Below, in pieces: positions 3,986 to 22,349 of a stretch of 64,000 nt of DNA. Each line of letters opens with the position of its first letter. The first letter of the stretch is position 1. Source of the stretch: Marsupella aquatica (lineage: Eukaryota; Plantae; Marchantiophyta); contig OZ316898.1 in assembly GCA_973895155.1 (NCBI GenBank), forward strand, positions 18,487,292 to 18,551,291, in the 5' to 3' direction. The position numbers were made by a program, and so were the translations under genes. The notes under the pieces are model-generated. The model was given only the letters and a program-made list of their open reading frames with translations. It had not been told where the DNA came from and made no database searches.

Positions 3986-4345
3986 CTTTCACACACACCA
4001 GAACCTACCACGGTTTTCAATTTATTTATTTTCATTTTATTTTTTTCATTTTAGTTTTTTTAAAGGAGAAATATGTGAAACCCCACAAAAAAGGAAGAGA
4101 GTCAGAATAGTTGAACCCAAGACCTATCAATCTTTATTCAAGTGAACTAACACAAAATCATGTCTCTCTAGGCCTAGGGGTTTGAATTACTAACCTGAAT
4201 ACCCATACTTTGCATACAAGTGGAGATGAAAACAAAAACAAATCATGTAAAAATGAAATTCTATTTTATTTTTCATAATTCATCTTTGCCTTATCCCTAG
4301 TTTTTGTCCACCCTCATTTCAATTTTGTTTGTATTCACGGTTATG

Positions 4346-5024
4346 GTCTAGAGGCTTCACTCTAGACCATAGCCCTGGAAAGTAGCTTTGCATAGTGTAG
4401 CAAGATGAAAGCAATTGCAACCTTGAGAGCACTTGCCAATGCAGCTGCAGTGGAGCTAAAATGAGAGGACCAAATTTTGGTTGTCCATTTGTTCTTGGTG
4501 GGCTTTGTCCCGCTAGCTTGTGAACAGAGGACTGTCAGCCTAGCGGGCAGCCTAGGGAGGAAAAGATGTTGGGCTGGAACACTGGGGTGGGCAGACTGGG
4601 TCACGGTGGGGGTTCAAAAATGGGCCGACAGACAGATCCCGGTGTTGCTCCCAGCTGGGCACAATAGCAGACCAGTGGAACTGTTCTTAGAGCATCTTCA
4701 CTGCTTTGTTGGCTGCCGCTCCCCAAACGATAGAAGTAGAGGTGAGTTGAGGAGAGTTAAGATGAAAGTGTTGCTACTGATGATCCACAATTCCACCAAA
4801 AAGCCCCAAACTAACCTCATCTCTCAAATAGTGGATTTGTACCTTCAAATATACCAATCAAATGTATTTGGATGAGTCTCTTTTGTTATTGATGAGAATG
4901 GAGGTCTGAACAGTGTGGTCACCACTTGGTGATTAGATTTGGAAACTGACTTCTAAATCTTACTAGTAATTCCTGAACAGAAGCTAGAGTCAGGGTCTAG
5001 GTTTATCCAGTGAAGCCTCTAGAC
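4346..5024. mobile_element. Non-autonomous TIR element (~680 bp)
   Basis: Perfect 16-bp inverted repeat gtctagaggcttcact (4346-4361) / agtgaagcctctagac (5009-5024). The TSD is ambiguous (TA or CTAG). A related left end, tctagaggtttcactcta, sits at ~6778. Confidence 0.65.
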
Positions 5025-5316
5025 AGCCCCACCATATGTCTGAATCTATGTTATGTGAAATTGATCATACATGCTCACTTTTGTTATGACTCTGTTGTCG
5101 TTTAAGGAATGAGCATTCGGGCGTCTTCAGAAATACAAATTTATCAATGGAATCCCCAAATTTTCTCTTGACCTGTTTATTTGGCAATTTAGTGTATGCC
5201 ACACGACGACAGGAGCATAGCTTTGCGATCTGTTATCCACGAGAATTTGGCGGGAGCGTACCTGCCACAACATGCCACCGATCCTAACGAATGGTACAGT
5301 CCCTGGACACTATAAT

Positions 5317-5629
5317 AGGGCGTCTCAAACTTAAGCATTTGGAATTCCGAATGGCACCCGGGATTTCACAGTCGCGGGCCGCCCGGATCAGGTGGTCGGC
5401 CCACCGATTTGGTGACCGTAAAGTTTTTCCCGGGTTTTTTTTATTACAATTTTTCTTTGGAAAAACCCAGGTCTAACCCGTGCCGGGACTCCTTTGAGGT
5501 GCGAGGTAAAGTTCAGACCCCCAGTTTTTTGGGACCCGATTTTGGGTACCGGTGTTCAATATCGGGCGGCGATTAGAGACATCCGGGTGACCGGAAGGAA
5601 TCCTAGAACGTGCAGGGTTGAGACGCCCT
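5317..5629. mobile_element. 313-bp MITE of the AGGGCGTCTCAA (Pangu-like PHIS) family
   Basis: AAT(5314-5316)+agggcgtctcaa ... ttgagacgccct+AAT(5630-5632). Termini and TSD match the element at 12130-21585. Confidence 0.9.
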
Positions 5630-8600
5630 AATATGGGCGGACTCATCACTGTACATGTACTCCACCCGCACTGCCACCGGGGCCGGGATCAAAATTGACC
5701 GGCTGGGGCGCTGGGCCGCCATTCGTACGCCGGCCCCGACAAAACCACAATACAGTATTACAGTATCATTGCGGGAACTGGAAGATCGTATTATACAGTA
5801 CCTGCACCGCACGTACTGTACATTATTGAGGGCCCCGGGCTCCCGGAGACTCAACATTGGGACTCAGTGACGACGGCCCAGTCCCCTGCGCTGCTGCGCA
5901 CTTGCGACGCACAGCCAGGGACATAGTGTCCCGGGGAAGATCGAACGGCTACTATGAAAGCCCAGGTGGCGCACACTTGTGAAATGAAATATTCTATCTC
6001 CTTGCCTAGAGTCCCGGCGCATTGGCGGCGTCTCACTAAATGGAATGGACGTCAACAGGATGCTGGGGTCTAAATGAGGAGGTGAGCCATTATTGGTAGA
6101 CCGCCAAGTCGCCTTTGAAAGTTTCCGTTTCCTCGAGTCCTCGTGTTAGAGCATTGTACACCCCTAGTCCCTACAGTAGGGACTGTCGCATAGGAGGGTA
6201 ATTTTTCATAGTTCGTTTTCACTTGTCTTGATGCCCGTCCTGAGTTTTCACTTGGTAATTTTCAGGGCATAACTCTGACCTGCTACTTTTACTAAATTAG
6301 TTTAAGAATGAAAATCAATAAAAGGCATCTACTATAGGTTATTACCGTACTCGTAGACAATAATAGCCCTCTAAAATGTGAGCAACAGTTTTCGGGGCAC
6401 ACAAAACCCTATAATGAGTACTTTACTATGTACTTCATGCTCCTTGTGATTTTTCACGTCATAATGTTCCATGCTTTATTGATGAGAATACAGACTAGAG
6501 ATTTGGATAGTTCATTATAAAAATTCTCATTTGATATTACCACAAATAGTAGAAGTAAAACATCTCATAGGTTTTAGGTGGATTATCTTGACGTTACCAA
6601 AGCATTATGGACAATAATAGCCCGTCAAAATTTGCACTAAGGCAGCTTTTTTCAGTCCACAATGTCATCTATCACTACAGTTTAAATGCCCAGATCTTTC
6701 TCATGAAACAGATGGCAAAACCGTTGAGCCAGTTTTGAGGTCCACCCCAAAGTGTAGTTGTGCTCTCAGAGTCACACTCTAGAGGTTTCACTCTACATCA
6801 TATGCCCTACTCCTAGCATCCAATTGCGCTTTATGAATTAAATTCACCAGGGTTGTGAATGCTATAGTCTGTAAAAACAAGTCGGGAAGTTTAGATGGAC
6901 ATGAAAGTTATACCTGATGCTAGAAGAAGAGTTAGATTATGGCTAATACTTGTGACTGGGTCATGAGACCCATAACTTTTGACTAATTTTGACAGAAGTG
7001 GAAAAATTGGCTCTTTCAGGTTTGGTGAATGTTATCTTGTGTGAAGGATGTCAAAGCTCAAAGGGACACAGAATTTTACTCTATACATGGATGAACAAGC
7101 AAAACCCTCATGGACACAAATATATTTTAAAATCTGTTCACATGCCAAAGTGTACACTGGTATTCCAAGAATGGCATTTAAACGTGCATTTGACATGTAG
7201 TAGAAGACTTTTAGTGGATTCTTCCTGTATTCTATCGGTGGAGGGGCCTTTTCGTCCAACTGAAGGAGTTGGGTGCCCTTGAAACGACTGCTGTGTATCT
7301 TTCTACATTTTCATGTCATGACATTGTACGTAAGGTTCTGCCAGTATTGCAACACTACAAAGATTCTGTGTCCAATTGAGTAGTAACGTCAAATTTTGTA
7401 ACTTTGGCACTACGATTCTACGTTATGGGACCCTCTGACATTTTTGTGTCAAAAATTCTAGTAACAGTTCCTATTACAAGTTTTTGCTTATACTATGACC
7501 AACAATTGCTAGTGGGGATTTTATGGTCAACCATGCCTAAATCACGACCTGCATGGTCAAAAACTATCCCGGATGCTATTAATTTTCACACAAGAGTTTT
7601 TAAGGGAACGAGGAATTTTCACACTTAAAGGAAAGACTTTATGAAGAGTGTAACTAGTAAGATAGGAATGATGCGCTCTTTAGGGCATTCCCACCAATGG
7701 GTTACATTAATTACTATATCATCACATCTGGTTTAGGGCAAAAAATGAAGTCGCCACCAATCTATGTTCTATAACCATATAATTGCAATCAAAACCTACA
7801 CCCAGGCCTACTGTCTAGCGTGAAGTCCCAAGTTCATGACTTTTGGGGCATAATCCAAAGTGGGGGTGCATGCAAAAGACAGGGATAGGGGGCAAGTCAT
7901 TGACGACAAGGATGGGTAGTGAATATTTTTGCCAGGTCTTTATTGTCCTCACCTCTATTTACGTTGAAAGAATGAGAAATCAAGCTAGTATGACTAAAGC
8001 GACTCCGTAGCGAAGAGTGCATTTTCTACCATTTTCTACATTGATACGTGGTTTGGTCTCCTTCTTCCTTCTTAGACTGCCCAACAAGGGTCAAACCTCA
8101 CAAATGGGTCTCAATGGATTGCAATGGGGACTCAAGTCTCCTATGAACAAGTCCTGTTCTGATGACCTCTGTTTTCGTTGTGCTGGATGGCTCAATTGAC
8201 TATATCCATGTCCTGAGCCACCTTTAATTGACTCGATGTGAGGCTAAATTCCTCACATGTAGTTGAGTATGTAGTCACACCAGTGGGGCATTGGGGCCGG
8301 TGGGGTTATGGGTGGGTTAAGACGAGGAAAGGAAGTAGTGGAAGCTTGGATGGACACAAAACTTTGAGAGATGTGATGCTTAGATGGACACGTGAAATCC
8401 TGCTCAACACAAATGAACCATTTAAATTTACCCACATCTCTAAGTTCCAACTATGACATGTAAACATGCATTTGACAGGTGATAATTAGAGTGTTTTCAC
8501 TGGACTCCTCAGTCTGGTAATCTGCAACCTCAGGTCTCATTCAATTAAAGGAGTTGGGTTCCTCAAGTGCACCAGCCTATATATCCTCTTACAATTTCAT

Positions 8601-9058
8601 ATCATCAACCAATTGAACTATAAGATTCTGAGAGTATCATGACGCTGCAAAGTCCCAATATCCATCCGAGTAGCAACATCACACATTTGAAACCACAGGT
8701 CCCATCAGAAAAACCATTATACAATGAAAATGTATTGGGTAGATAATATAGTGACTTTCTGGATTTTTTAATGGTACAGGTGCATGGATGGACTCTCATA
8801 TAAGACTTTGGACAGCTCACTTGTTTGCCCGTATAGAAAATTTGGAGGGTTCCATGCCCACTTTGTGAGAGTGTAGGCCTGATCTTCCCAGTGCCAATGG
8901 CCAGAATTAGATCCATGGGGGACCTGGGTCCTCCCAATCTCTGTAGGTAGTTTGTGCCCATCTCAGTTTGCACTTGGGGAAGGAAAGTACACTGCAAATT
9001 TGAATGCCTATTTACTAGTCACACAGTGGAAAAAACAAGGTGACCACCTCACTCTCAG

Positions 9059-9364
9059 CCCGGGGTCCTCACTTTTTTTCTTCCGACCCATCACGCACAA
9101 ATAAGTATAGGGTTTTTTTATTGGGTTTAGTGAAATATTTTTAAATTTTTTTTGAACAACATTAGGGTTATTTTAATCCAATTTTTGAGAATTATAAGAA
9201 TCATAGGGTTTTTTTGAAATCAAATATGAGAATATTCTTGGAATATTCTATTAAGTTAGGGATAAAAAATTTTCGAAAAACTTTATTGACTTAACTTTTA
9301 GGGTGTTTATTCCCCCAAAACTTTGAGCGTGATATGGGACACCCCTTGGATTGAGGCCCCCGAG
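9059..9364. mobile_element. 306-bp MITE with 8-bp TSD (hAT-like TSD length)
   Basis: TSD actctcag at 9051-9058 and 9365-9372. TIRs cccggggtcctca / tgaggcccccgag. A close inverted copy lies at 41609-41918. Confidence 0.9.
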
Positions 9365-9507
9365 ACTCTCAGACAGACATTGGATTGTTTGGAGGGGCTT
9401 CTGGTGGGTTCCATTTGCATTATGTGGGAGTGGGGGCCTGACAGTTCCACTCCCAATTTAGGAAACTGGGTTCCATGGTGGACAAGCTCTATACCTGTGC
9501 GTTGCAC

Positions 9508-10035
9508 AAAAGATGTCATGACGCCCAAGATGTCGTTAAGAGAAAAGATGTCTGTGACGCCCAAGATGCCATTAAGAGAAAAGATGTCATGTCACCCAAG
9601 ATGTTGTTAAGAGAAAAGATGTCATCTCGTGATGTTTTTGAGACAAAAGATGTCACTACGCCCAAGATGTCTTTAAGAGAAAAGATGTTATTAAGTGTAA
9701 AGTTGTTGCTAAGTACAAAATGATCCATATTAAGTAAACTGATGTTGTTAGTCATCTATGTTGTCGTCTCCGTTGCACAAAAGATGATGTTGCATAAATA
9801 TGTCATTGCATTTACAATCTTGTTCAATAAAAGATATCATTAAGTAAAATATGTGGTTGCTCGAAAGATGTTGTTTACTAAAAGACATAGTTCGGCAAAA
9901 GACGTCAATGCTTAATAGATGACGTTGTGCTAAACATGTAGTTGGAAAATATCATGGTGCGAAACATATCTTTGTTAGAATTTAGATCTCATGATTGCCT
10001 AAAAACAAATTGTCGAGTGAAAGATGTCATGACAC
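9508..10035 (+). repeat. Minisatellite, ~35-36-bp unit made of ~18-bp AAGATGTC subunits, decaying 3'-ward
   Basis: aaagatgtc.tgacgcccaagatg...ttaagaga repeats clearly over 9508-9695, then degenerate aagatgt-containing units continue to ~10035. Confidence 0.8.
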
Positions 10036-12565
10036 AAAGAGAGGCGACAACCACCACCAAAGTACAACAAAATGAGAATAATTTTTAAAATTGTTTTTGT
10101 ACTTGATATCTTTTAAAACCTTCCTTCTTTTTTCACTATTTTTCTTGTCTTGTCTTTGTCTTGTTGATTAGATTGTGCACTATTTTCTTGATTATGTAAA
10201 ATATTTGTCATTAAACTCCTCTCATGATGTCACCATGCAACACTTCCTTTGCATGGATGATATGGGATGGGGCATAGTATGGCATTGATGGTAGAGGGAG
10301 GAGCAATTTGTATGCATGATTGGCATGGATGGTAAAGGGGAAGGCTTTGTACTTTTCTTGCTTTTGGAAAAACATGTTTACACAAAACATAATTATTTTC
10401 TCTTATTCCTTTTCCTTTTACAGTTCCCTTTCACTCTACAAACTGTGTATTATAGGAGTTAATATGCACTTCCATAGTGCCATTTCAATTTGTACAATAA
10501 ATAAATAACTATACTAAGATTAGGCCTACTAGCAACATCCTTAAACCTTGAAAGAATTTTGTCATTCAGCAACACTGCCTTTTCACTGTGTACATTGTTT
10601 TTCAAAATGAAATGTGGAAACCCGGAAGATAATATTCAGACTTCAAGTTTTTGTCCTGAAATAAGAAATCATTAATGGTTTGTGCAAGTCCTGCTGGATT
10701 TGGCACTAAGGTAGGTCCATTTGTGGCAATCCCAAGAAAACTGAAATCCAAATTTGAACTTTAGTAGTGTGTGGAAAAATCAAGGTGATCCCCTCATTGT
10801 CAGATAATAGAAGACCCAGGTATTGCTAACTATGTGGGAGAAGGGACCTGACACTCCCACTCATAATGGTTGGAGCTTGCAACCCAGGTCCCGATTGAAC
10901 CAGGTAACTACTGATTCCATGGCGGAGCTGGGTTCTTGTTGGTAGTCCATTTTTGGTTCATCTCACCTTCCACTCGGGAAACTATATAGCAGCTTTTAAT
11001 TATGTTATCACTAAAGATATTGTAATTTACAATAGTATCATTATGTTGATTGTATTCACAAATTTATGACAGTTTTCGTGAACCAGAAGCCCAGATCAAC
11101 ACAGACGTTTGTCGGGTGACCTGGATGGACACAGGGTGCGTGACAGTGTAAAACCAAACACCAATGACATTGGAAATGGATTACGTCTGTCATTACCATA
11201 AGCTGTCCCTGGTTTAGACTCCATAATTTTCCTTCCATTGTTTTTAATTCCATCACCCAACAAGCATGCATGGCTGCTGCCAAGAACGCCTCATGATCGC
11301 ATTGGTTGTGGATAATGGCTACGGGAAGCAGCAACACAGGATTTGGCCCAAGTAATTTGCCCTAGTCTGCATTGAGGTCCGCATCAAGTTCCGCATCCTC
11401 CATTGTTACCACACTCACCACATGAAACAATGTTGCATTCAATTTGTTCTCATCCCAGGCTTTCAGAGATCATCACATACACTGGTTGCAACGTTAATAA
11501 AGTTTTGGCTGCGAGTTTTGGATACATTGTGAGCTGCAAATGTGAGAACTGAAAGACTGCTCCTGGGAACATTGGCTGTAAAATCTGATGTTGTGCATGG
11601 ATGATTATCAATACACTGTGTTTTGATAGCCACAGACCTTCGCTTCCCTGATGATTACCAGTGTCACGTCCAATTTAAAGGATCTTTAATTCTATGATTT
11701 CTCAGAACACGGATTGCTGAAAGAATTGACTCACTCGCTGCACTGTGGGGATAATCAATCTGCAAGAAGCGAGCAAAAGCAAAAATTATAATTCCCCGAG
11801 TGAGAACTGAGTTTTGTGCACCCCCTTTATCAACCTTTCAAGCAGCTGGCAAAAATATGCAAAGATTGAGAGAAACAAAGAAAGACTGTAGAGCTTTTCC
11901 TTCCTCAAATTTGCACCCCATTTGAACTGAGAAATAATGAACTCGTCGTGAGTCAGCCAGTTGAATTGCATGTAAGGAAAGAGAGACTGCAAAATGAATA
12001 ATTGAATCAAAGTTTGCAAGAGGTCATCAAAGCAAAAGAATAAAATGTCTACAAACAATAAGGAAGTCAATTTAGTTGAGTATCTTGCGTGGAGCACAAT
12101 TCTTCCCAGTGATCTGAAATCAAAGCAATAGGGCGTCTCAAAGCCAAGCCATAATGAAAATTTAAGCCCACGGGAGGTTCTGACGGGACTTAGAAAAAAG
12201 AGGGGGTAAGGTTTGACCCGCCCCGTATGGCAGCCATTACGGCCTAAGTCACGTTTCAATTATCAGCACCATTTCCTCTCCCGCTTGGAATGTCCCTGCC
12301 CGAACGAGCCATATGCTGCCACGTCGGTTGGATAGCGTAGGTCCTCCATTCCAAAGTTGCAGAGGTTTAAATTTTTAGGAGCACCATTGACGTGTAATGC
12401 GTCGATTGCACTTTAATCACCGACAACGTACTCGTCGTATGCACTTCAAAATCTGGATTTCCGGATTGCCGGATTTCAATTTTCCCGAATGTGCGGATTC
12501 GCGCACTTCTTTCAAATTTTGGCATCGTCGACATCTCCCTCTATCACAACACAAATTGCTAAGTC

Positions 12566-14196
12566 ATGGACAATGCCTCGTCTGAATCTATGTATATATG
12601 TGATAGAGCTTTTGACATTTTAGTTCAAGCACGAACTGCCCTTCGTCACGAGGTCGAGCACAAGGTTGCTGATTACTTGCAGTCCATTCTTGACAAGCCC
12701 ACATCTTCTTCTGTGGGCTCACACTCTTTCAGCACAATGTCTAGCACAGGGAGCCAGGGTTTTGTGAGAGAAGGTTTTGGGAGGAGCAAAGGCTCTGCCT
12801 TCCAGCCACCACGAGCAACTGTTGCCAACGAACAGTACCGAGTTCCTACTGAGAAGTTTCGCTTGAAGGATGAAGACTATGATCTCATAGTCTCATACCT
12901 TGAGATCCCTGAGAACTTTGCAGCAGTGCACGGATCAGGTAGGAGAACAAAGATTGGGCAGAAATACCAGTCTAAGGCCACTGTCATGAAGTCCATGTTG
13001 GCTGCACTCATTCATCATGGTTTCCCCAAGGAAATCACTGCACCAAATCTGACGAAGCGATTTCAACGATACAAATTGAGATACAAGCAAGCTCTTGAAG
13101 TGAAGAATGGCACTGGAGCAGGGCTGATAGAGGAAGAGTCATTGGCTGGGATGACCTTGGAGGACAAATTCAACCGCCTCTGCCCTCATTTTGAGTGAAT
13201 GGATGCTCTCTTTGGAGCTAGACCCAATGTTAACCCACCAATTGTTGGTGATGTTGGAGTTGAAAATCTTGACTTTATCATGACTGAAGATGACTCTGGG
13301 GATGTGGAGATTGTCGATGATTGGGAGAACTCATGCCCAAATATTGCACAACAACACAGTCCAACCATAATCCTTGATGGTACAAGCTCTTCCATTCCTT
13401 TTTTGTTAATTATATTTTCGGATTCAGGATTCTGTGTTCACTGTAAAGTGCCTAACAAATAAATTAATCTTCATCTTCTTCCTGGGGTGACACAGATACG
13501 CCTGCACCATCGCCAGCTCAATCTGTTCACACATCAACACCAGCAGTGCATCACATTCCTACACCTTCAACTTTAGGACGAGCACCCCCAGTCGATGATG
13601 GCTTCTGGAAGGAAATGGAGGACATCGCCAGGGAAAACATTGGGGCTCATGTCACCAATTGCCTGTGTCAAGTTTGTATCAGGTTTGCAGGCATGAACAC
13701 TAGGGAAAACATGCCCCGCCCCACAGACAATGCTACTTCAGGACCATGAACTGCCTCACCAATTCCTCCCACAGTCCTAGCCCCCTCGAAGAAGGGGCCC
13801 AAGACTCCCGCGCAAGCGGCAAAGGAGGCCCATAAGGAATTCAAGCCTTCCTTTTCAGCAATATACGCTGAGAGAATCAACCTCAAAGCTGATTATCAAA
13901 AAGATTTGATCATAAGTCGTGACAAGTGGAAGACCCAAGACATTGTTGAGCGACGTGAAGCCAGAACCCAAGCTCAGGCTGAGGCTTCAGCCAAGCACCG
14001 GTTGGACAGGAAGCATCAACTGGCCTTAGAAGCCTTTTGTGCTGAGAACGCACTGAAGAAAGTCAAAGCAGAGCAAGAACATGCAGAGAAGCTGGATAAA
14101 GCAAATAGGCGAACTACATTGTTGATCACTATGTTAGGGTCCAACAAGTCTTCCGATGAGATCAAGGATCTTCTTCAGCTTCTAGATAAAGAGTAG
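12566..14196 (+). pseudogene. Myb/SANT-like DNA-binding partner of the Harbinger transposase (2 exons, two premature stops)
   Basis: Exons 12566-13379 and 13496-14196 (GT-AG intron with a cctaac branch point) give 505 codons. In-frame TGA at 13196 and 13747 (probably from CGA). Motifs TGAGL...LEDKFNRLCPHFE(R)MDALFGARPNVNPP and a C-terminal charged coiled-coil are typical of fungal/oomycete-type Harbinger partner proteins. Confidence 0.8.
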
Positions 14197-14749
14197 ATTG
14201 AACTATACTACATATTTGTAGAACCAGATCTGAATTTAGTAATGTACGTACTGCACAATGTACATCTTTTATTTTCAAACTCTGCATTCGTGTACAAAAC
14301 AATGTCTCTCAACATCCTTCCTATGCTTTGACATTGTATGCCCGCACACCTGTATAAACAAACCTGGCAAACTACTACCAAAAAATAATCTTATTGCTGT
14401 GAAACCAATTGTGAGAAACTTCCGGAATGCCGGAAATTCAGAATTCCGGTAAGCAAAATGGACTATGGATTGACGTCTAAATCGGTACTTGGTGTTCAAC
14501 TATTCAGCACTTTATATGATCCTAACGTTCTCAACCACTTCTGGTAATCTCAGTCCCTATACGAATGGCCTCAAGAATTTCTTCTCTTTTACCCTCATTA
14601 TGAAAAGTTAAGGGCGAGGAATTAAACTATAGCTTATAGCCAAGCAAAGGGAGTTGCTTGTTAATGAACAGTCTGTGTACCCTAGTAGCTTCACGATAAA
14701 CTGTGAGGAAGTCTAAATTGTTGCAGGTATCATACTCCACAGTAGGAAA

Positions 14750-17352
14750 TCACTCCCGGAATCTTTCCTCACTTGACATGATATCCACATAAGGTTCAAA
14801 GTCCACCATCAGTCTATCATAATATGTCCTGTACTCCAGCAATGTAGGAGTAGAAATGTTATCCCACATTCTCTGCAAATCCTTTGTCTTCATGTAATTG
14901 TAAATAGCAATAGCTGGTGTCTTAGGATGGAATGTAATTGGATTCCCACCTTCAGGCCTCTCTGATTGCTCTAGAAAATCCAGCATGAAGAGCAAACAGT
15001 ACGCTGGTAGATTGCCACACTCAGCAATCAGCATTTCACTGTCAAACACTTCAAGATCACCGTACATTACCATCATCGACAGTATCTCACGAAAATACTC
15101 CGTAACGTGCCACATATTCAAAGAATCATGCTTTTGGATGAGGCTAGACCGGAAGCACCTAACTTGAATATGTACAAGGCTTCCCTTCTCTTGGCAAAAT
15201 AATAATGCCAGAACTCCTGCATAGGACTTTGGTATTGTTGAATAATTGAGCATGCCTCTACATATCTTGCTACTTCTTCTGCTGGTGTGGGTGCTCAAGG
15301 CAGGTGAATTGATAGACACGATGTGTGTCTGAGCCTCCGAATCTCTTATCCAGTAACTGTTGCCACCATATTTGCTTTTATTAATGGGAACAGTACAATT
15401 CTCACAGCCCTCTATGCAAATGTAATTGTCAGGGATGTGCTTATGAAGAAATGTCGTCTTCTCTCCTTCTGAGTCATCTTTGAGAAGACTCACCTCAGCT
15501 TCAGCTCCAGCCTCAGGGACATCCTCAGACACAAGGTCAAGGACATGCTTAGGGACATCCTGGGACATGCTCATCTAGAGCATCATCTTCATAAACATGT
15601 TCTTTTGTTGGTGTAGCATTGGGAAGACTCCCTTGTGGAACAACGTGAGAGATTATGTCTACCTCTACCTCTACCTCTGCCCATGCGTCATGTAGTGCTG
15701 TTAATTGTGGACGTGCCTCATGGACATCATTATTGTCCATGCATTGGTCCGGGAGAAATTGTGTGTCTACCTGTACCTGGACCTCTGCAACAGCCTCCGC
15801 GTCTGCAGTTGCCTCATGCACTGATGGAAACTCTGCCCCTCCAAGGTCATGGACAGGATTGTCCGTGCATTGCTCAGCCACATCACTATCTTGCACTGCC
15901 TCCACAATAATAGGACTAAGTTCTCTTATGGTAAAGCTGGGACCCGACTCACCATTATTGTCAATTTCCGCATCTCCAAGTACTGTGGCATGTATTTTAT
16001 TTGCATCCACCAGCTTCTGTACTTCATTCACTATTTCCTGAGGACAACAACCCAACATAACAACCAGGTCACTAATGATCTTCTTGTTGCCTTCTGCATC
16101 TACTGAACTTGGCGATTGTGAAGCAGACTGTACACTGGAAGTTGTTTCTGTGACATTAGTGGGATTTGGCCGGCGCCTTTTCCTTTTTATGCTCATGTCT
16201 GCCAACAGCTTCAAATTGTCATTCTCTGCCTCCAATATTGTAACTCTATCTCTTAAACTCTCCGCATCAGTGAATGGCCTTTGCATAGGAGAGTCCACTA
16301 GACCTGTTTTGTCAGGAATGGCATCTTCCATTTCCTATACTGGAACATCTACGTACTGGGGAACTTCGCCAGGAATGGCATCTTCCATTTCCTGTACTGG
16401 AATATCTATGTATTGGGGAACTTCGCCAGGAATGGCATCTTCCATCTCCTGTACTAGGGGACTTTGTCAGGAATGGCATCTTCCATTTCCTATATCAGAA
16501 CATCTGTGTACTGGGGGACTTCGTCAGAATTGGCTTCTGCCTGTAAATCATGATGTGGTTCATCACCTGTTTCGTCTTCCGACCCCTCATGACCGTGAGT
16601 GTCATCCTCTGAATCCAAATTAGAGTCACATATACCAGTAATGTCAAGGTTTGCAAATATACTTTGTCGTTCCTATTTTTCTTCTGGTAGGAGACAAGAC
16701 CCATGTACCAATACAATTGGCCTACATACACCTGGAGATAAGTAACATTGTTTTTGCCTAACTGTGCCAGCTGCGACCTTATTACTGCAGCCAAAATTAA
16801 TCCCCAATTAGTTTTCCTCTGTTGTGTCCATGATGCTACAATGGTGTTGGCCAAGCTACACATAACTTGGCTCGGCCTCATTGGATGGAAAATTGGAATG
16901 AGAAAGCGAAGCAGCATGTCAAGGTCACCGTTGTTGCAGTCACTGATCTTCCACCCATCCTTGGTCCCAGGTGGGACAGAGAAATACGCCTCAGAGCAAT
17001 GTTGGTGGCGCCTGAACATCCCCTCCCCCTCGGTTGAGATGTGGAATGCGTCTCCAACAAACTCATTTGTCCACTCGTCAGTTTGGCCTCTTACTGTACC
17101 CTCAAACCTGTCAGCAATAATGCCGTCAATGATTTCTGCCAGTAGCAAAGGTGCTACGACACCCCAGGGAACCATAAGTAATCCTTCCAGTCCCATGACG
17201 CGCAGCATGCTCTGCATACGTTTAAGACGACCCTCCACGGCAGGGAATCGAGGGGAAACTTCTCTCAATACCAAATCGTGGTTGTTTTTTGGACTTCCCA
17301 TTACGCCTGCCAAGGGGTACAGGATATAGGAAGTGTACACTATGCGTGCCAC
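14750..17352 (-). pseudogene. Long cargo ORF (~860 codons) broken by frameshifts and stops: N-terminal bryophyte repeat-associated domain, 19-aa acidic repeats, coiled coil, globular C-terminal domain
   Basis: Three abutting minus-strand ORFs (16495-17352, 15549-16331, 14750-15574) join through frame shifts. The alternative frame reads PEEK*ERQSIFANLD...EVPQYTDVLI*EMEDAIPD, with TAG stops at apparent CAG positions. Confidence 0.65.
16312..16530 (-). repeat. Coding tandem repeat, 57-bp unit (EMEDAIPGEVPQYVDVPVQ) x ~4, one unit shortened
   Basis: caggaatggcatcttccat(t/c)tcct.ta recurs at ~16313, ~16370, ~16427 and ~16468. Confidence 0.85.
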
Positions 17353-18203
17353 AGAACATACGATGAATGAAATTTGCTACAACAATGGTTCATGGAGTCC
17401 AAAATCCGGAAATAAACCAGGCAAAACAAGGATCAATGATGAGCGATTCCTCCTTCACAATCAACACTTCAAATCCAACAGGCGGGAAGGATGCTATGCA
17501 CAATGTGTGTTGTTCCCAAAGTACAGATGTTTACGTTCTACGTACCCATTTCAAATTTCGTAATTCCGGAATTACAAAATTCCGGCATTCCGGAAAGTTG
17601 GCACTTTGGAATGTATGTTTGGTGAAGACAGGGATATGGAAGTTTGTAGTAGTTTCATATTATTGATGTTTGGAGTAGTTTCATACTATTATTATTTTTG
17701 GGACAATCTAGTGATGAAGGGGTGAAGCAGCATTTGGGGTTTCTTTGGTTTGCATCATAATTTTCCTCATTATGTGACCTATGTGGTACATGTTTGTTGG
17801 TCATGTACGTATCCATATTCTGAGGGAATTTTTGTCAAGTCCTTTTCATTGAGACATGCACATGTTGGGAAATATATCCTAACTTTATTTAAACACATAT
17901 GTACACAGTCATAAGTGCCCACATATTCACAGTCGTTGAGTTGAGCGCATGGTGCCATGAAGGGAATGTAAAAAATAAATATAATGGAATATGGTTCACA
18001 CTTACAATAACAGGACTTCTCCATTCACAGTTATTCCTCCAACATTATTATTTGGCCTGCATGCTACCTACAATTCGACGGGAATTCTATACTTCCAACT
18101 CCTTCTCTTGACCTTCCTAGTTTAAGCAGGGTCATTGTGCCCTGATACACTTTACCTATGACAACATAGACATTTTCAAGCCTTTTACAGCAGGTGCTAA
18201 TAA

Positions 18204-19688
18204 TTAAGTGACATTTTGAGTACTCCCGACATAGAGACATCCACCCGGTTCTTTATGGAACTGCAATGCCCATTGCATGATGTTGTTTTGTAAGGTAACA
18301 CTCTGTGGTTGGGGTCGACCATGTCGAGGTCGAGGGTCTACTACGAAATCCACACCTTCATCTTCTGAGTCAACATTGTCAACTGTAATCTCCTCATCCT
18401 CATCAGTCCAGAGGTAGTTCCTATTAATGACAAAGTTGTGCAACCGTGCACACATTACAATCCACCTCACTAGAAAAAAGTTGTATGCTTTTGATTTCAA
18501 TTGGACTCGCATTTCTCTGAGTGAGTACCACCGTGATTTCAAGACACCAATGCAATGCTCATTTGTTACCCTGCACTTGGCCACACACATGTTGAAGTCT
18601 TCACGGTCTGAGTTGCATTCTGCCCTTTTGTATGAGCAAACCAGGTGTGGCATGGACGCATACCCACTGTCTCCGAGAAGGTATTGACCACGGCCAAAGA
18701 GAATGCCATCATTTTGTCTGCGAAACAATGAGGACTTCTTGTAGCATTGCAGGTCTGAACAAGAACCAAGGATACCTGTCATAGCACTGAAATAATGTCA
18801 ATCCCAGCAATGCAAAACCATGTACTCATGTGTAAAAGTAAAGAGACATATGAAGAAGACATTGACCAGTGTAAAGGAAAAGGATTTTCCTTCTGTGGTC
18901 GCAAATAACTTGTGTATTTTCAAGTACCGACACTTTCTATCGTAGTAGCACTCTCCAGAATCCTTTGGCCGTTGAGAAAGTGGAATGAGAGTCCCATCAA
19001 TAAGGCCCACACACCCTGGGAAGCCTCTCTTTGAAAACTCCTCTGATATCTTTCGTCTTTCAGTACGATCAGGCCATCTCAAGTGGTCCTTCAATGTAGT
19101 TTCCATGGCAGTAAAACAACGAGTTGTGAAATTACAGAGAGATCCTGTACTAACTCCCCAAGTTGGAATGAGACGATTTAGACAAGCTCCATTGCCTTCA
19201 TGTCCCAAACGATCCAAGGTAACAGCTAGCTGCCATTCCACTGGAGCCTGTTGATATGGTGAATCATTGACAAAAACTGGATGATCCTCAATTAGGTGTA
19301 CTAAAGCAAAGAAAGAGGCTTTGTCCATTCTGGTCATCTGCCTGAATAATCTTGGTGGAAGTTTATCAAAAAACTGCAAGACAAACTCCCGAGATTTGAT
19401 GGTGATAGTCTTATCAACAAAATATCTGGTGTTTTCCATTACACTGTACAACTCAAGCAGGTCATCTGAATTGCCCTCAAGGTCATACATGTATGTCATA
19501 GCCTCGGAGTCAGATGATGAATAAAAATCTTCGTCAGACATACAGTCTGTGGGTGTTGTAGCATCACTCCAATCGCCTTCACTCCCGGTATCTGGTTCTT
19601 CTTCACTAGAACTGTGCAATACTATATTTAACATCAACATGTCTTTCACAAGCCGCATTGCTCTTTGGCGATTAAATATTCGAGGCAT
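18204..19688 (-). pseudogene. Harbinger/HARBI1-type DDE transposase (DDE_Tnp_4 family), 2 exons, one frameshift
   Basis: Motifs FRQMTRM...F..LV.LIEDHPVF, QLAVTLDRLGHEGNG, GFPGCVGLIDGT, YLLGDSGY and RVTNEHCIGVLKSRW carry the D-D-E triad. GT-AG intron at 18776-18866. A frameshift near 18920 restores NTQVICDHRRKILFLYTG. Confidence 0.92.
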
Positions 19689-19944
19689 ATTTCTCCTTCA
19701 TGCACAAAAAATGGACATGAGAAATTCAGACAATAGAGGTAAAATTTATAGTCCATACATGTCGTTGCATCTAAACATTTATTACATGTGAAAAAACTCA
19801 GTTGGGAGGTACAAAATTCCGGAATACTGAACCCTACACTGCTAGGGTACGTATGGTACTATGAATGAGAAATGCAATGTGGGCTGCTATAGAAAAACTG
19901 ATGATGCACGACGTGGTAATAATGTGGGAATTGCACCACACATC

Positions 19945-20583
19945 CTAGTCATCCAAATCCTGTAGGTTTAGCGCTCTAACAAGGTTGTCAATTGCTTCTC
20001 TGACTAGCTTAACATGAGTTTTCCCTTGGCTCATGGAGGGTTTCTGTTGGGTACGACCAGAAGACTTTGGAGTACCGTGCCCAGGATTGGGTCTATGTAG
20101 AGCTACATGGGGACGAGCATCCATAAAACATAGATGCTCAACCTTTATTTCATATTCAGCAACCGACAGCCAGACTTTCACTCTCGGACATGGTTGAGTG
20201 AGAGCCAGGAGGTATTGAAGTTGTTCAATCTCGCCCTGGCCTGCAAATTCTTGGGGAGTGCACCCCATGAATATTGAGGCATCTTCCCACATCATGGCAC
20301 TCAATGGTGCCGACCCAGCATGGACAGCATCACAGATGCGGATATGGAATCTATAACTCATGCTAGGTGGCAGATCGTGGTCACACTTTGGACCGCGCTC
20401 AAGGGACTTCTTGCATGTCCCCCCAGTCTTCAGCCTTCCAAGGCATGATGCATACACAAATTTTCGTGGATATGGATTCTCAGCTTCAAAATTCACTACC
20501 CAGGCTAGGCATGGATCAAAAGATACATTTTGGCCACTGGCCCTACTCTCCTCCACCTCAGCAAGGGATGTCCAAAGACCCAT
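19945..20583 (-). CDS. Cargo protein resembling the RPA1/RPA70 C-terminal Zn-ribbon OB-fold (ssDNA-binding) domain
   Basis: Open 212-aa frame from ATG 20583. FVYASC-x8-CKK-x7-CDH, YRFHIRICD and MMWEDASIFMGCTPQEF match the RPA70 DBD-C pattern Y.AC..C.KK / Y.L...I.D / T.F...AE.LLG.SA.EL. A likely 5' intron spans ~20587-20698. Confidence 0.65.
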   Translation of the reverse strand: MGLWTSLAEVEESRASGQNVSFDPCLAWVVNFEAENPYPRKFVYASCLGRLKTGGTCKKSLERGPKCDHDLPPSMSYRFHIRICDAVHAGSAPLSAMMWEDASIFMGCTPQEFAGQGEIEQLQYLLALTQPCPRVKVWLSVAEYEIKVEHLCFMDARPHVALHRPNPGHGTPKSSGRTQQKPSMSQGKTHVKLVREAIDNLVRALNLQDLDD

Positions 20584-20794
20584 CTTCTGCAATCTACATA
20601 TAGGAAGAACTGATTCAGGAAGTAATAACAGAGTTGGAATATACTGTCAATTAACTTTTCAAAGATTTCAAGCTGAACAACAACTGAAAGCACTCACCTC
20701 GCTGCTATTGTTGGAGTGAAGAAGCTCAAAACTTGTGATGACGATGCAAGTTTGAAACCTGGACGGAAGCCATATAAACACATTTGATATGACA

Positions 20795-21100
20795 ATGATG
20801 ATTTTTTCTGAATTCCGGAAAAATTGCATACAAACGCAATCTGTATCGTAACCAAACAACTATCGCAACCCAACAACTCACTTTGTTGCTCGAAAGTAGA
20901 AGAGGTATAGCTCAAGCTTCTGTAATCCACGACGTGATGTCGATGCGCATGCTAATCCAATAACACAAGCCATACGACGACAACGTCAAGACGATGATTT
21001 TTCCGGAATCCCGACAAATCTGCATACAAGCACATTCTCAAGCAGAACCAAACAACTGACCTGTTGCTCAAAATTAGAAGAGATTCAGCTCTAAGCAAGG
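20795..21100 (+). repeat. Two diverged direct repeats ~200 bp apart inside the transposon, each carrying TTCCGGAA
   Basis: gatgatttt..ttccggaa...tgcatacaa...aaccaaacaact...tgttgctc.aaa.tagaagag starts at ~20797 and again at ~20993. Confidence 0.7.
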
Positions 21101-22349
21101 CAAGCTGCGACCATACACAAGCCGACAACATTTGTCACGACTTCATCAATCGGAAACTGTGAAATTTGCATACACACGAAACTTGAATTGCATCTGCAAA
21201 GACTTACTTATTGCTTGAAAAGATGGTGCTATCGATCTCGCGATGTGCAGGTTGGACCTCGCGGATTGCAAGTTTAGGCTCGCGAAATGCAGGTGCGCCA
21301 AATTCACCACTTCTCTGTTGCGATCACCATGGCTCAGTTTTCTCCTCTCCGTCTTCGATAAGAAAGAGAGCGAGTTCAAAGTTTGGAACTGGCTACCTCA
21401 CGACATTGGCACTACAGTCCAACAAAGGCACACAGTATTTGCGCCAATGTTAACGGACCGTGTTTAAGGTAATGACTAAAGGCAAAAGCCCATGGGGTTT
21501 CCTTACGGGAACCGAAGATAGGCTCCCGTAACATGTGGCTTACGGGAGGGCCATAATGAGTTACGGCCTGGGTTTGAGACGCCCTAATGAGCGCAACAAC
21601 CAGTCCATTTTTTTGGAAGCAGCCAATTCCCGGTAAGACAGCCATTTTTTGGAAATCGCTGAAAAGTCAAGGATGTTGTGTTAGTCTGATGTTGAGTTAG
21701 TCTCTAAAGGCCTGTAGTGTAGGTGCACACGATTGGAGAAGCGCCAAGGGTGTTTGAACACATTAATGAGAACCCTAGACATGGTTTGCAACTCTGTCGA
21801 ATATATCCCTCTTTGCTTTGTCCCTCAATTTTGCCAAAGTGTTGGGCGGACTCTAGCCTTTGTCTGTAGGAAGGAAATCCTGCTTGATGGACATTCGACT
21901 GGAACAACCAACCAAAACCGGCTGTTCCCGGTAAGACACCACCCTACAGGTCACTTGAGAAGCGCAAATGAAAACAGTGTTATGTGAGCAAAATATCTCG
22001 TTCACGTGTGTCCATCCAGGTTGTGTTTGTCTTTCCGGGATGACAAATATCCTGGCTTTAAGTTCTTGTTTTCATACATGGTTTCACTTTATTACATTGG
22101 TGACACCATATACAAATTTGTGACATATTTATGAATTAAAAATATTGAGATAATGGTTAAAATCGAATATCTCTAGTGACAGGAAAACCGAACATTTAGA
22201 GTTGTCAAAATGCTCCCATGTATGTTAGCAACACAAATGACCCAATTTTACTTACATTGTCACACTGAATATTCCTAAGTAGTACATCGGTGTGTCATAA
22301 GGAATATTCCCAAATAATATGATTTATGTCTATTTATGGGAGCAGAAAA

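Follow-up and report, generated by a model that had tools for sequence, protein, structure and literature searches.

Transposons that recognise their own DNA, such as those built on VANC, TnpA or MURA, represent the best-understood route by which an element escapes or times its epigenetic silencing, and such systems are so far known mainly from Mutator and CACTA elements of Arabidopsis and maize. In VANDAL21, a 9-mer specific to the family has built up in the non-coding regions, in part through tandem duplication, and the VANC protein binds this motif, with loss of local CG methylation (PMC5735166). TnpA of Spm and the AtMu1 transposase bind clusters of family-specific, CpG-containing motifs and activate their cognate copies, and the hypomethylation seen with these proteins is limited to the motif-bearing regions (bioRxiv 10.64898/2026.08.24.746577). 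Proteins derived from Harbinger transposons, HDP1 and HDP2, act in Arabidopsis anti-silencing (PMC5339849). The Pangu group, a part of the PIF/Harbinger-IS5-like (PHIS) superfamily, is defined by its ANT target duplication and has terminal inverted repeats (TIRs) of 11-40 bp that start with AG or GG; the Pangu elements described so far average ~3.5 kb and carry two open reading frames (ORFs) (PMC4482050). Here we describe a cut-and-paste transposon of this group, 9,456 bp long and with four genes (g1-g4), which occupies positions 12130-21585 of a 64-kb stretch of contig OZ316898.1 from the liverwort Marsupella aquatica (the whole stretch analysed, hereafter the window). Its non-coding spacers carry the palindrome TTCCGGAA as the core of a copied module, and this module could well be a promoter element private to the transposon family.

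The palindrome TTCCGGAA occurs eight times in the window, where 0.88 copies are expected, and none of 100 dinucleotide-preserving shuffles reached eight copies, the maximum being three. Six of the eight lie inside the element (14420, 17564, 17588, 19817, 20813 and 21001) and two in the remaining 54.5 kb (39930 and 53665). One-mismatch variants are found at 12459, 14428, 14444, 17404 and 17580, and the degenerate form DKCCGGHW gives 12 distinct sites in the element against 16 across the other 85% of the window. The consensus of these sites is approximately W-T/K-CCGG-A-W, with the central CCGG kept in all 12. An unbiased scan of 8-mers against Markov expectation returned ATTCCGGA, TTCCGGAA and AATTCCGG as the top three of the element, and these three are dispersed, while the other top-ranking 8-mers belong to single tandem arrays. 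About 128 kb of related liverwort loci hold two copies of TTCCGGAA, and the octamer is ~30-fold enriched in the element relative to its surroundings and to related DNA. All six perfect sites are confined to the 33% of the element not taken up by the four genes, a placement with P = 0.0014 if the sites are taken as independent and P = 0.012 if they are taken as four independent clusters. The eight perfect positions are exactly those listed in the initial annotation of this DNA, and its variant sites are likewise present; its further observations, that no perfect copy lies in an ORF, that each of the four genes has a motif or variant upstream and that the convergent 3′ ends have one between them, also hold on the sequence.

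Repeat finding and alignment revealed that the sites are not independent of one another, being the core of a single module of 35-45 nt. In this module TTCCGGAA is followed by TGCCGGAA in an 8-bp register, then by six spacer bases and a third octamer 16 bp on. Three full copies, one of them degenerate, and three partial copies (the half modules of Table 1) are present, together with a single variant site. A search with the 16-nt core of the module, allowing up to 3 mismatches, gave 11 matches in the window against 0.44 expected, of which 10 were in the element. The enrichment of the site is real and, judging from these alignments, is accounted for by the copying of one unit inside the element. 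What the initial annotation described as an accumulation of motifs is one module copied, and not many independent gains. Since the copying of a unit explains the enrichment, the question becomes why the unit occupies the positions at which it is found.

These positions are regular with respect to the genes, as each of the four start codons has a site or module ~75-135 nt before it, and the orientation of the module, as read from its asymmetric parts, is parallel to the downstream gene in 4/4 cases. When upstream regions were compared in pairs, the module was the best or near-best common sequence for almost every pair, in the same orientation. The half module upstream of g3 matches the g2 module at 13 of 13 positions in the same orientation, and its motif lies 67-74 nt upstream of a TATAAAT (19750-19744); the g4 motif lies 34-41 nt upstream of the TATA-like sequence TTTATATGG (20779-20771). 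Sites 20813 and 21001 sit in a 196-bp tandem repeat, and in each of the tandem units of this region the motif is followed, ~113-115 nt on, by a splice-donor-like GTNAGT. From their layout, the units may be duplicated promoter-plus-first-exon units, perhaps serving as alternatives to one another. Upstream of g2, the full module is an inverted copy, over 39 nt and with 79% complementarity, of the module in the convergent spacer (14411-14449), and the pair brackets g2. The convergent-spacer module faces g2 in antisense, and a TATA-like sequence, TTTATATGA, which is located at 14511-14519, 60 nt past this module, likewise points antisense into g2.

We favour, at about even confidence, the reading that the module is a family-private upstream promoter element, copied before each gene, that co-regulates the transcription units of the element. 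A single DNA-binding regulator would then control all four genes through the copied modules, and this regulator could be the cargo protein encoded by g2, the three-helix protein encoded by g1 or a host factor. Binding to the module would probably be methylation-sensitive, because the CCGG core holds both CG and CHG cytosines, and transcription would be expected to start ~30 nt after the TATA-like boxes downstream of the g3 and g4 motifs. The observations beneath this reading are the enrichment of the site, the common origin of its copies, their position and orientation relative to the ORFs, their absence from related elements and the presence of a different motif at the element ends; from these we infer that the module works as a promoter, where transcription starts, and that a binder exists and which proteins it could be. 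Several points weigh against a promoter role. The sole copy of the family examined is dead, with two in-frame stops in g1 and with g2 in three pieces, and there is no gene for the module in the convergent spacer to control. In related elements the start codon of the transposase gene is preceded by a splice-acceptor-like site, so that the promoter of g3 may lie elsewhere. The orientation argument is weak when taken alone (4/4, P = 1/16), and the enrichment itself follows from the copying of one module, which could be neutral.

Table 1. Features of the Pangu element in the window (positions are those of the window; modules, genes and element ends)
Feature	Position	Strand	Remarks
Left terminal inverted repeat AGGGCGTCTCAAA	12130..12142	+	Target duplication AAT at 12127-12129 just before
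Degenerate full module (TTCCGGAT, TGCCGGAT, then TTCCCGAA)	12459..12492	+	74-107 nt upstream of g1 start codon
g1, Pangu second ORF	12566..14196	+	Putative intron near 13380-13495; in-frame TGA at 13196 and 13747
Full module (TTCCGGAA, TGCCGGAA, then TTCCGGTA)	14411..14451	+	Convergent spacer between g1 and g2
g2, cargo gene, pseudogene	14753..17301	-	ORF pieces 17301-16498, 16331-15552 and 15574-14753
Single variant site ATCCGGAA	17404..17411	.	103-110 nt upstream of g2 start codon
Full module upstream of g2	17560..17604	-	263-303 nt before g2 start codon
g3, DDE_Tnp_4 transposase	18204..19688	-	Two ORFs, one putative intron
Half module with TTCCGGAA	19805..19833	-	129-136 nt upstream of g3 start codon
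g4, intact 212-codon ORF	19948..20583	-	Homologue at same position in Calypogeia fissa element L001
Putative GT-AG intron in 5′ untranslated region of g4, 104 nt	20594..20697	-	Predicted from sequence
About three tandem units, 146-196 bp	20797..21200	-	Third unit degenerate; upstream of g4
Half module with TTCCGGAA	20805..20825	-	~125-133 nt from g4 start codon after putative splicing
Half module with TTCCGGAA	20993..21016	-	Tandem-duplicate partner of 20805-20825
Subterminal CCGTAA/TTACGG cluster	21503..21566	.	One more at 12237; distinct from TTCCGGAA
Right terminal inverted repeat	21573..21585	-	AAT at 21586-21588 just after

The element terminates in a perfect 13-nt inverted repeat, AGGGCGTCTCAAA, flanked on both sides by a 3-bp AAT target duplication, which is of the ANT type. 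The g3 product matches the DDE transposase family DDE_Tnp_4 (PF13359) with an E value of 3.8e-16, above the curated cut-off, and this was the sole Pfam match among eight ORFs of the element, none of which showed a VANC-like domain. Because the ANT duplication, the AG-starting TIR, the DDE_Tnp_4 transposase and a second ORF without a Pfam domain (g1) all match the described group, the element is assigned by its sequence to the Pangu group of the PHIS superfamily and not to classical Harbinger; this assignment replaces the "Harbinger-type" label of the initial annotation. A 313-bp miniature inverted-repeat transposable element (MITE) at 5317-5629 has the same 13-nt terminal repeat as the large element and is also flanked by AAT duplications. 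Its interior is GC-rich and unrelated to the element, with three CCGGAW half-sites and one CCGTAA.

A word search with g3 found transposases of 51-69% identity in the liverworts Calypogeia fissa and Riccia and none above 69%, and six related loci from C. fissa and Riccia fluitans were compared, of which four, L001, L002, L003 and L006, had identifiable TIRs and flanking ATT duplications. The gene order of L001 is that of the window element, with a g4 homologue, the transposase, and g1 in opposite orientation, while L002 and L003 hold just two of these genes, the transposase gene and g1. The intact g4 protein had no exact match on record. L006 (Riccia fluitans, 8475-14890) has the same 13-nt TIR as the window element with transposases only ~50% identical, and by this comparison the terminal repeat AGGGCGTCTCAAA has been conserved between distant liverworts. 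All six related Pangu elements are without g2, TTCCGGAA and the 16-nt module core, and in none of them is TCCGGA enriched. The upstream regions of L001-L003 have only the terminal repeats in common, with no module, and upstream of their transposase genes the sequences could not be aligned beyond ~60 nt before the start codon, so that no counterpart of the motif was found by position. Among metagenome contigs, a 19-nt form of the module had 50 single matches, none with DNA or protein similarity to the element. On this comparison, TTCCGGAA belongs to this family alone, or at the least to this copy alone.

The related elements have internal repeats of their own. In L001, ~14 units of GGGAATTC(C) with a 9-bp period occupy the spacer between the transposase and g1 (16688-16918), and ~50 copies of GGCTTA or GGATTA lie at 12100-16600 around an unidentified 467-codon ORF (13569-14972). 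L003 has two tandem arrays, and L002 no notable internal repeats.

A motif other than TTCCGGAA is concentrated at the ends. Occurrences of CCGTAA/TTACGG lie within 250 bp of the ends in 5 of 6 cases in the window element, 5 of 10 in L001, 3 of 3 in L002 and 6 of 8 in L003, and this sequence is likely a conserved end-recognition motif in four Pangu families from two or more liverwort genomes. Sites of the TTCCGGAA type come no closer than 330 bp to the left end and 578 bp to the right end. As placed, TTCCGGAA is not the transposase docking site, a different motif marking the ends. Also in the right subterminal region of the window element, three CTCGCGA (core TCGCGA, a CpG palindrome) are present at 21230-21290 with a spacing of 24-27 bp.

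The initial annotation had considered a Myb-like and a cargo protein of the element as possible binders of the palindrome. The g1 protein pairs better, and most simply, with the subterminal CCGTAA, because both the protein and the end motif are conserved; the conserved domain of g1 is 55-60% identical across the four Pangu families. This domain was modelled with AlphaFold2 from seven sequences as a three-helix DNA-binding fold (predicted local distance difference test, pLDDT, 69; predicted template modelling score 0.55), an earlier model from three sequences with a pLDDT of 50 having been discarded. In VIA-align, the model matched the DNA-binding domain of Zeste (5cqq_B) with Z 8.0 and a root-mean-square deviation of 2.6 Å over 71 of 75 residues, and homeodomains came next (Z 5.6), with Myb domains also following. 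Foldseek gave no significant match to the model (E 1.7), and sequence and profile searches with g1 found no match in Pfam or the PDB. The "Myb-like" identity of g1 (Myb/SANT-like, Zeste-type) is plausible from the model, but it is not established. Where g1 has its first stop (TGA at 13196), the aligned codon of L001 encodes lysine, so that an origin of this stop by a CGA to TGA change is possible.

The ratio of observed to expected CpG (CpG o/e) follows the same division of the element into genes, spacers and ends. It rises from 0.35-0.46 in the gene bodies to 0.5-0.6 in the internal spacers, and the two end regions have values of 1.13 and 0.94; when it is followed in 300-bp steps, its local maxima coincide with the module-bearing stretches. 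A good part of these maxima comes from CpGs of the motifs themselves, as the motif octamers, which cover <4% of the bases of the three internal spacers, contain 8 of their 34 CpGs. In five elements (that of the window, L001-L003 and L006), the terminal 400 bp have a CpG o/e near 1, compared with 0.4-0.65 in the interior. The persistence of CpG in the motifs that the initial annotation had noted is real but modest. The pattern fits either a long-term protection of the ends and modules from methylation decay or selection on the CpG sites themselves, two explanations that are indistinguishable in these data.

Among the proteins encoded by the element, g2 is the best candidate for a reader of the module, because the motif and g2 are both family-private and the two best-kept modules bracket the gene. 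By word search, the N-terminal 268 residues of g2 had a single relative (P0019), and a two-sequence profile made from g2 and P0019 and run against 1.84 billion representatives found 444 proteins, of which 213 had E values of 1e-10 or better; counted at 50% clustering, this puts the family at 444 or more representatives. In many of the matches the domain forms the N-terminal part of a protein of 600-800 residues, and members of the family combine a conserved N-terminal domain (~200 residues) with a coiled-coil middle part and a C-terminus that is again conserved. The last 136 residues of g2 match residues 591-724 of P0020 (E 1e-19), so that g2 is read as a full-length but decayed member. Four copies of a 57-bp (once 41-bp) tandem repeat are found within g2 at 16296-16541, at the reading-frame break. 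Pfam returned no domain for g2 and 10 relatives, and a BAH domain at the C-terminus of g2 had no Pfam support. A profile search of the PDB gave coiled-coil matches only, in the middle of the protein, with no recognisable DNA-binding domain, and a search of the protein atlas gave only sub-threshold leads (0.79-0.85).

In two of the three contigs examined with a g2-family gene (L057 and L058), the gene directly follows a Gypsy-type reverse transcriptase, RNase H and integrase, in sense orientation, and each of the three (with L059) has its own clusters of CpG-bearing motifs beside the gene. The palindrome AGCGCT occurs 14 times in L058 against 1.7 expected, in five clusters (636-706, 4130-4190, 5059-5129, 6739-6803 and 7991-8030), one of which is inside the g2-like ORF. 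The spacings are all multiples of 8, and the layout, hexamer, 2 nt and hexamer, is that of TCCGGA-nn-GCCGGA in the window element. The first and last 123 nt of L058 are identical, and the contig was thus assembled as a circle or concatemer. L057 contains six copies of ACTCGTGG, four of TCGCGA and six of AGTCCG (three at 8-bp spacing), both upstream and downstream of the gene, and TCGCGA is the top palindromic hexamer of that contig. L059 has 25 TCCGTA, 18 of them in a same-orientation array that ends ~140 nt before the start codon and resembles the arrays of VANDAL21; the 18 same-orientation copies of TTCCGTATTT lie at 116-482, just upstream of the g2-family gene, and a second cluster lies downstream (4172-4498). 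A TCCG core is seen in 3 of the 4 g2-bearing contexts, on which we base no claim.

In a more specific version of the promoter reading, which sharpens the idea of the initial annotation, the modules may be recognition sites of an activator or de-silencer encoded by the element itself, of the VANC or TnpA kind, with g2 a likelier reader than the Myb-like g1. We regard this version as possible but rather unlikely to hold. It gains from the fact that related elements without g2 are also without the motif, from the position of the two best-kept full modules on either side of g2, and from the clusters beside the gene in L057, L058 and L059; the contrast between element ends, with CpG o/e near 1, and gene bodies also counts in its favour. 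Binding of family-specific CpG motif clusters by transposon proteins, with local CG hypomethylation, is documented elsewhere (PMC5735166; bioRxiv 10.64898/2026.08.24.746577). It loses from the searches of g2 and its 10 relatives, in which Pfam gave no DNA-binding domain and the PDB profile gave coiled coil only, and from a motif density (12 sites in 9.5 kb) far below that of VANDAL21 arrays. The association between g2 and motifs comes from four contexts, all of them g2-bearing and without a proper control, and the co-occurrence of g2 relatives with repeats may be incidental because plant Gypsy elements in general have family-specific tandem repeats between pol and the 3′ long terminal repeat (LTR) (PMC11963269).

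A broader form of this idea, which is speculative and in our judgement improbable, is that the g2 family of at least 444 representatives (650-800 residues; in Gypsy elements and this Pangu element) recognises element-private, CpG-centred hexamers and thereby activates or de-silences its own element. The hexamers, set in an 8-bp register, would on this equally tentative account be TCCGGA here, AGCGCT in L058 and AGTCCG in L057, and in the window element they would have come to stand before each of the genes. If true, this would be a self-recognition analogous to that of VANC and TnpA, unrelated to them in sequence and crossing transposon classes.

The sites could also be functionless and have arisen in a decaying copy through internal duplications or through a nested insertion with the motif in its inverted ends (for example a solo LTR or another, g2-bearing element), which we think unlikely. 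The copy is a relic with pseudogenes, tandem duplication accounts for sites 20813 and 21001, and related elements carry internal repeat arrays of unrelated sequence. An insertion is suggested by the 39-nt inverted repeat that brackets g2, by the segment 14411-17604, which reads TG...CA in the orientation of g2, and by the residence of g2 relatives in Gypsy elements. Read as a target duplication, however, the flanks of that segment (CAAAG and CAATT) agree at only 3 of 5 positions, and a nested insertion gives no account of the modules upstream of g1, g3 and g4, which are outside the bracketed segment. Under any functionless origin, the ~75-135-nt spacing before every start codon and the gene-parallel orientation would have to be coincidences.

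ONSEN is an example of a stress-inducible transposon, and the sites could similarly be heat-shock elements (TTCnnGAA), or sites of other host factors, that make the element stress-inducible, although we consider this doubtful. In the literature the TTCCGGAA octamer, present in 720 papers, appears nearly always in primers, and the sole cis-element sense found for it is that of a heat-shock element; it fits an inverted nGAAn dimer and is listed among heat-shock elements (PMC9621618), and positions 14413-14427 form a perfect three-unit heat-shock element. Such elements have at least three contiguous alternating nGAAn units, and a perfect third unit is present at only one of the six sites; a third unit with at most one mismatch is present at 4/6, against a null of 0.33 per site (P ~0.1). 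Compared with the heat-shock element nGAAnnTTCnnGAAn, then, TTCCGGAA is a formal two-unit match in which the third unit is mostly missing and conservation is on CCGG and not on GAA/TTC. The variants TGCCGGAA, TTCCGGTA, TTCCGGCA and ATCCGGAA keep CCGG, which spans the free central dinucleotide of a heat-shock element, and break TTC or GAA. Furthermore, octamers paired at 8 bp do not keep phase with the 5-bp heat-shock unit, and the related elements are without the heat-shock-like TTCCGGAA.

Very improbable is a role of the sites in binding the transposition complex, with the Myb-like protein recruiting the transposase as in Harbinger3_DR. In its favour are the three-helix DNA-binding fold modelled for g1, the binding of transposon ends by the Myb-like proteins of Harbinger (PMC5339849) and the three CCGGAW half-sites, all of them loose, in the MITE with the same TIR. 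Against it, most sites in the element are internal (the nearest at the distances from the ends given above), the subterminal 250 bp are occupied by CCGTAA, conserved in four families with similar g1 domains, and L006, with a nearly identical TIR, lacks TTCCGGAA.

If the module does act as a private promoter element read by a protein of the element, the logic of self-recognition would extend to the Pangu/Harbinger-type superfamily and to bryophytes, in this case a liverwort. The palindrome is a short and concrete DNA probe that, together with two candidate proteins (g1 and g2), lends itself to a direct test. The side finding of this work may matter more, namely a large unnamed accessory family of retrotransposons whose genes sit beside their own CpG-motif arrays, as the g2 family turns the vague class of "additional ORFs" into a testable hypothesis.

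Compared with the Pangu elements described so far, the window element shares the AAT duplication, the AG/GG start of the TIR, the DDE_Tnp_4 transposase and a second ORF without a Pfam domain, and differs in being 9.5 kb long with four genes and a private candidate promoter module, where those average ~3.5 kb with two ORFs (PMC4482050). The relatives of g2 resemble the additional ORFs and tandem repeats of Gypsy elements (PMC7264820; PMC11963269) in their position just after the integrase and near family-specific arrays; the g2 family differs in having no Pfam domain (it is not TRP28/Transposase_28), in its sense orientation and in occurring, here, in a DNA transposon.

With VANC/VANDAL21 the element shares an enriched non-coding motif that is rare in related families, lies upstream of genes and is partly tandem-duplicated, and it shares an accessory gene beyond the transposase. 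VANDAL21 belongs to the Mutator superfamily and has same-orientation 9-mer arrays at high density, whereas the window element is of the Pangu group of PHIS, with a CpG-centred palindrome in a paired 8-bp register and its 12 sites belonging to one copied module. The element may work like the VANC and TnpA systems and is not a member of them; we say "work like" because no VANC homologue was found in the Pfam search of its eight ORFs. In common with TnpA and AtMu1 it has family-specific clusters of CpG motifs, and the motif-restricted hypomethylation of those systems fits the CpG o/e pattern observed here. The motifs of TnpA and AtMu1 are terminal and double as transposition sites, while in this element the end motif CCGTAA and the gene-proximal TCCGGA differ, so that a motif for expression would be separated from a motif for transposition.

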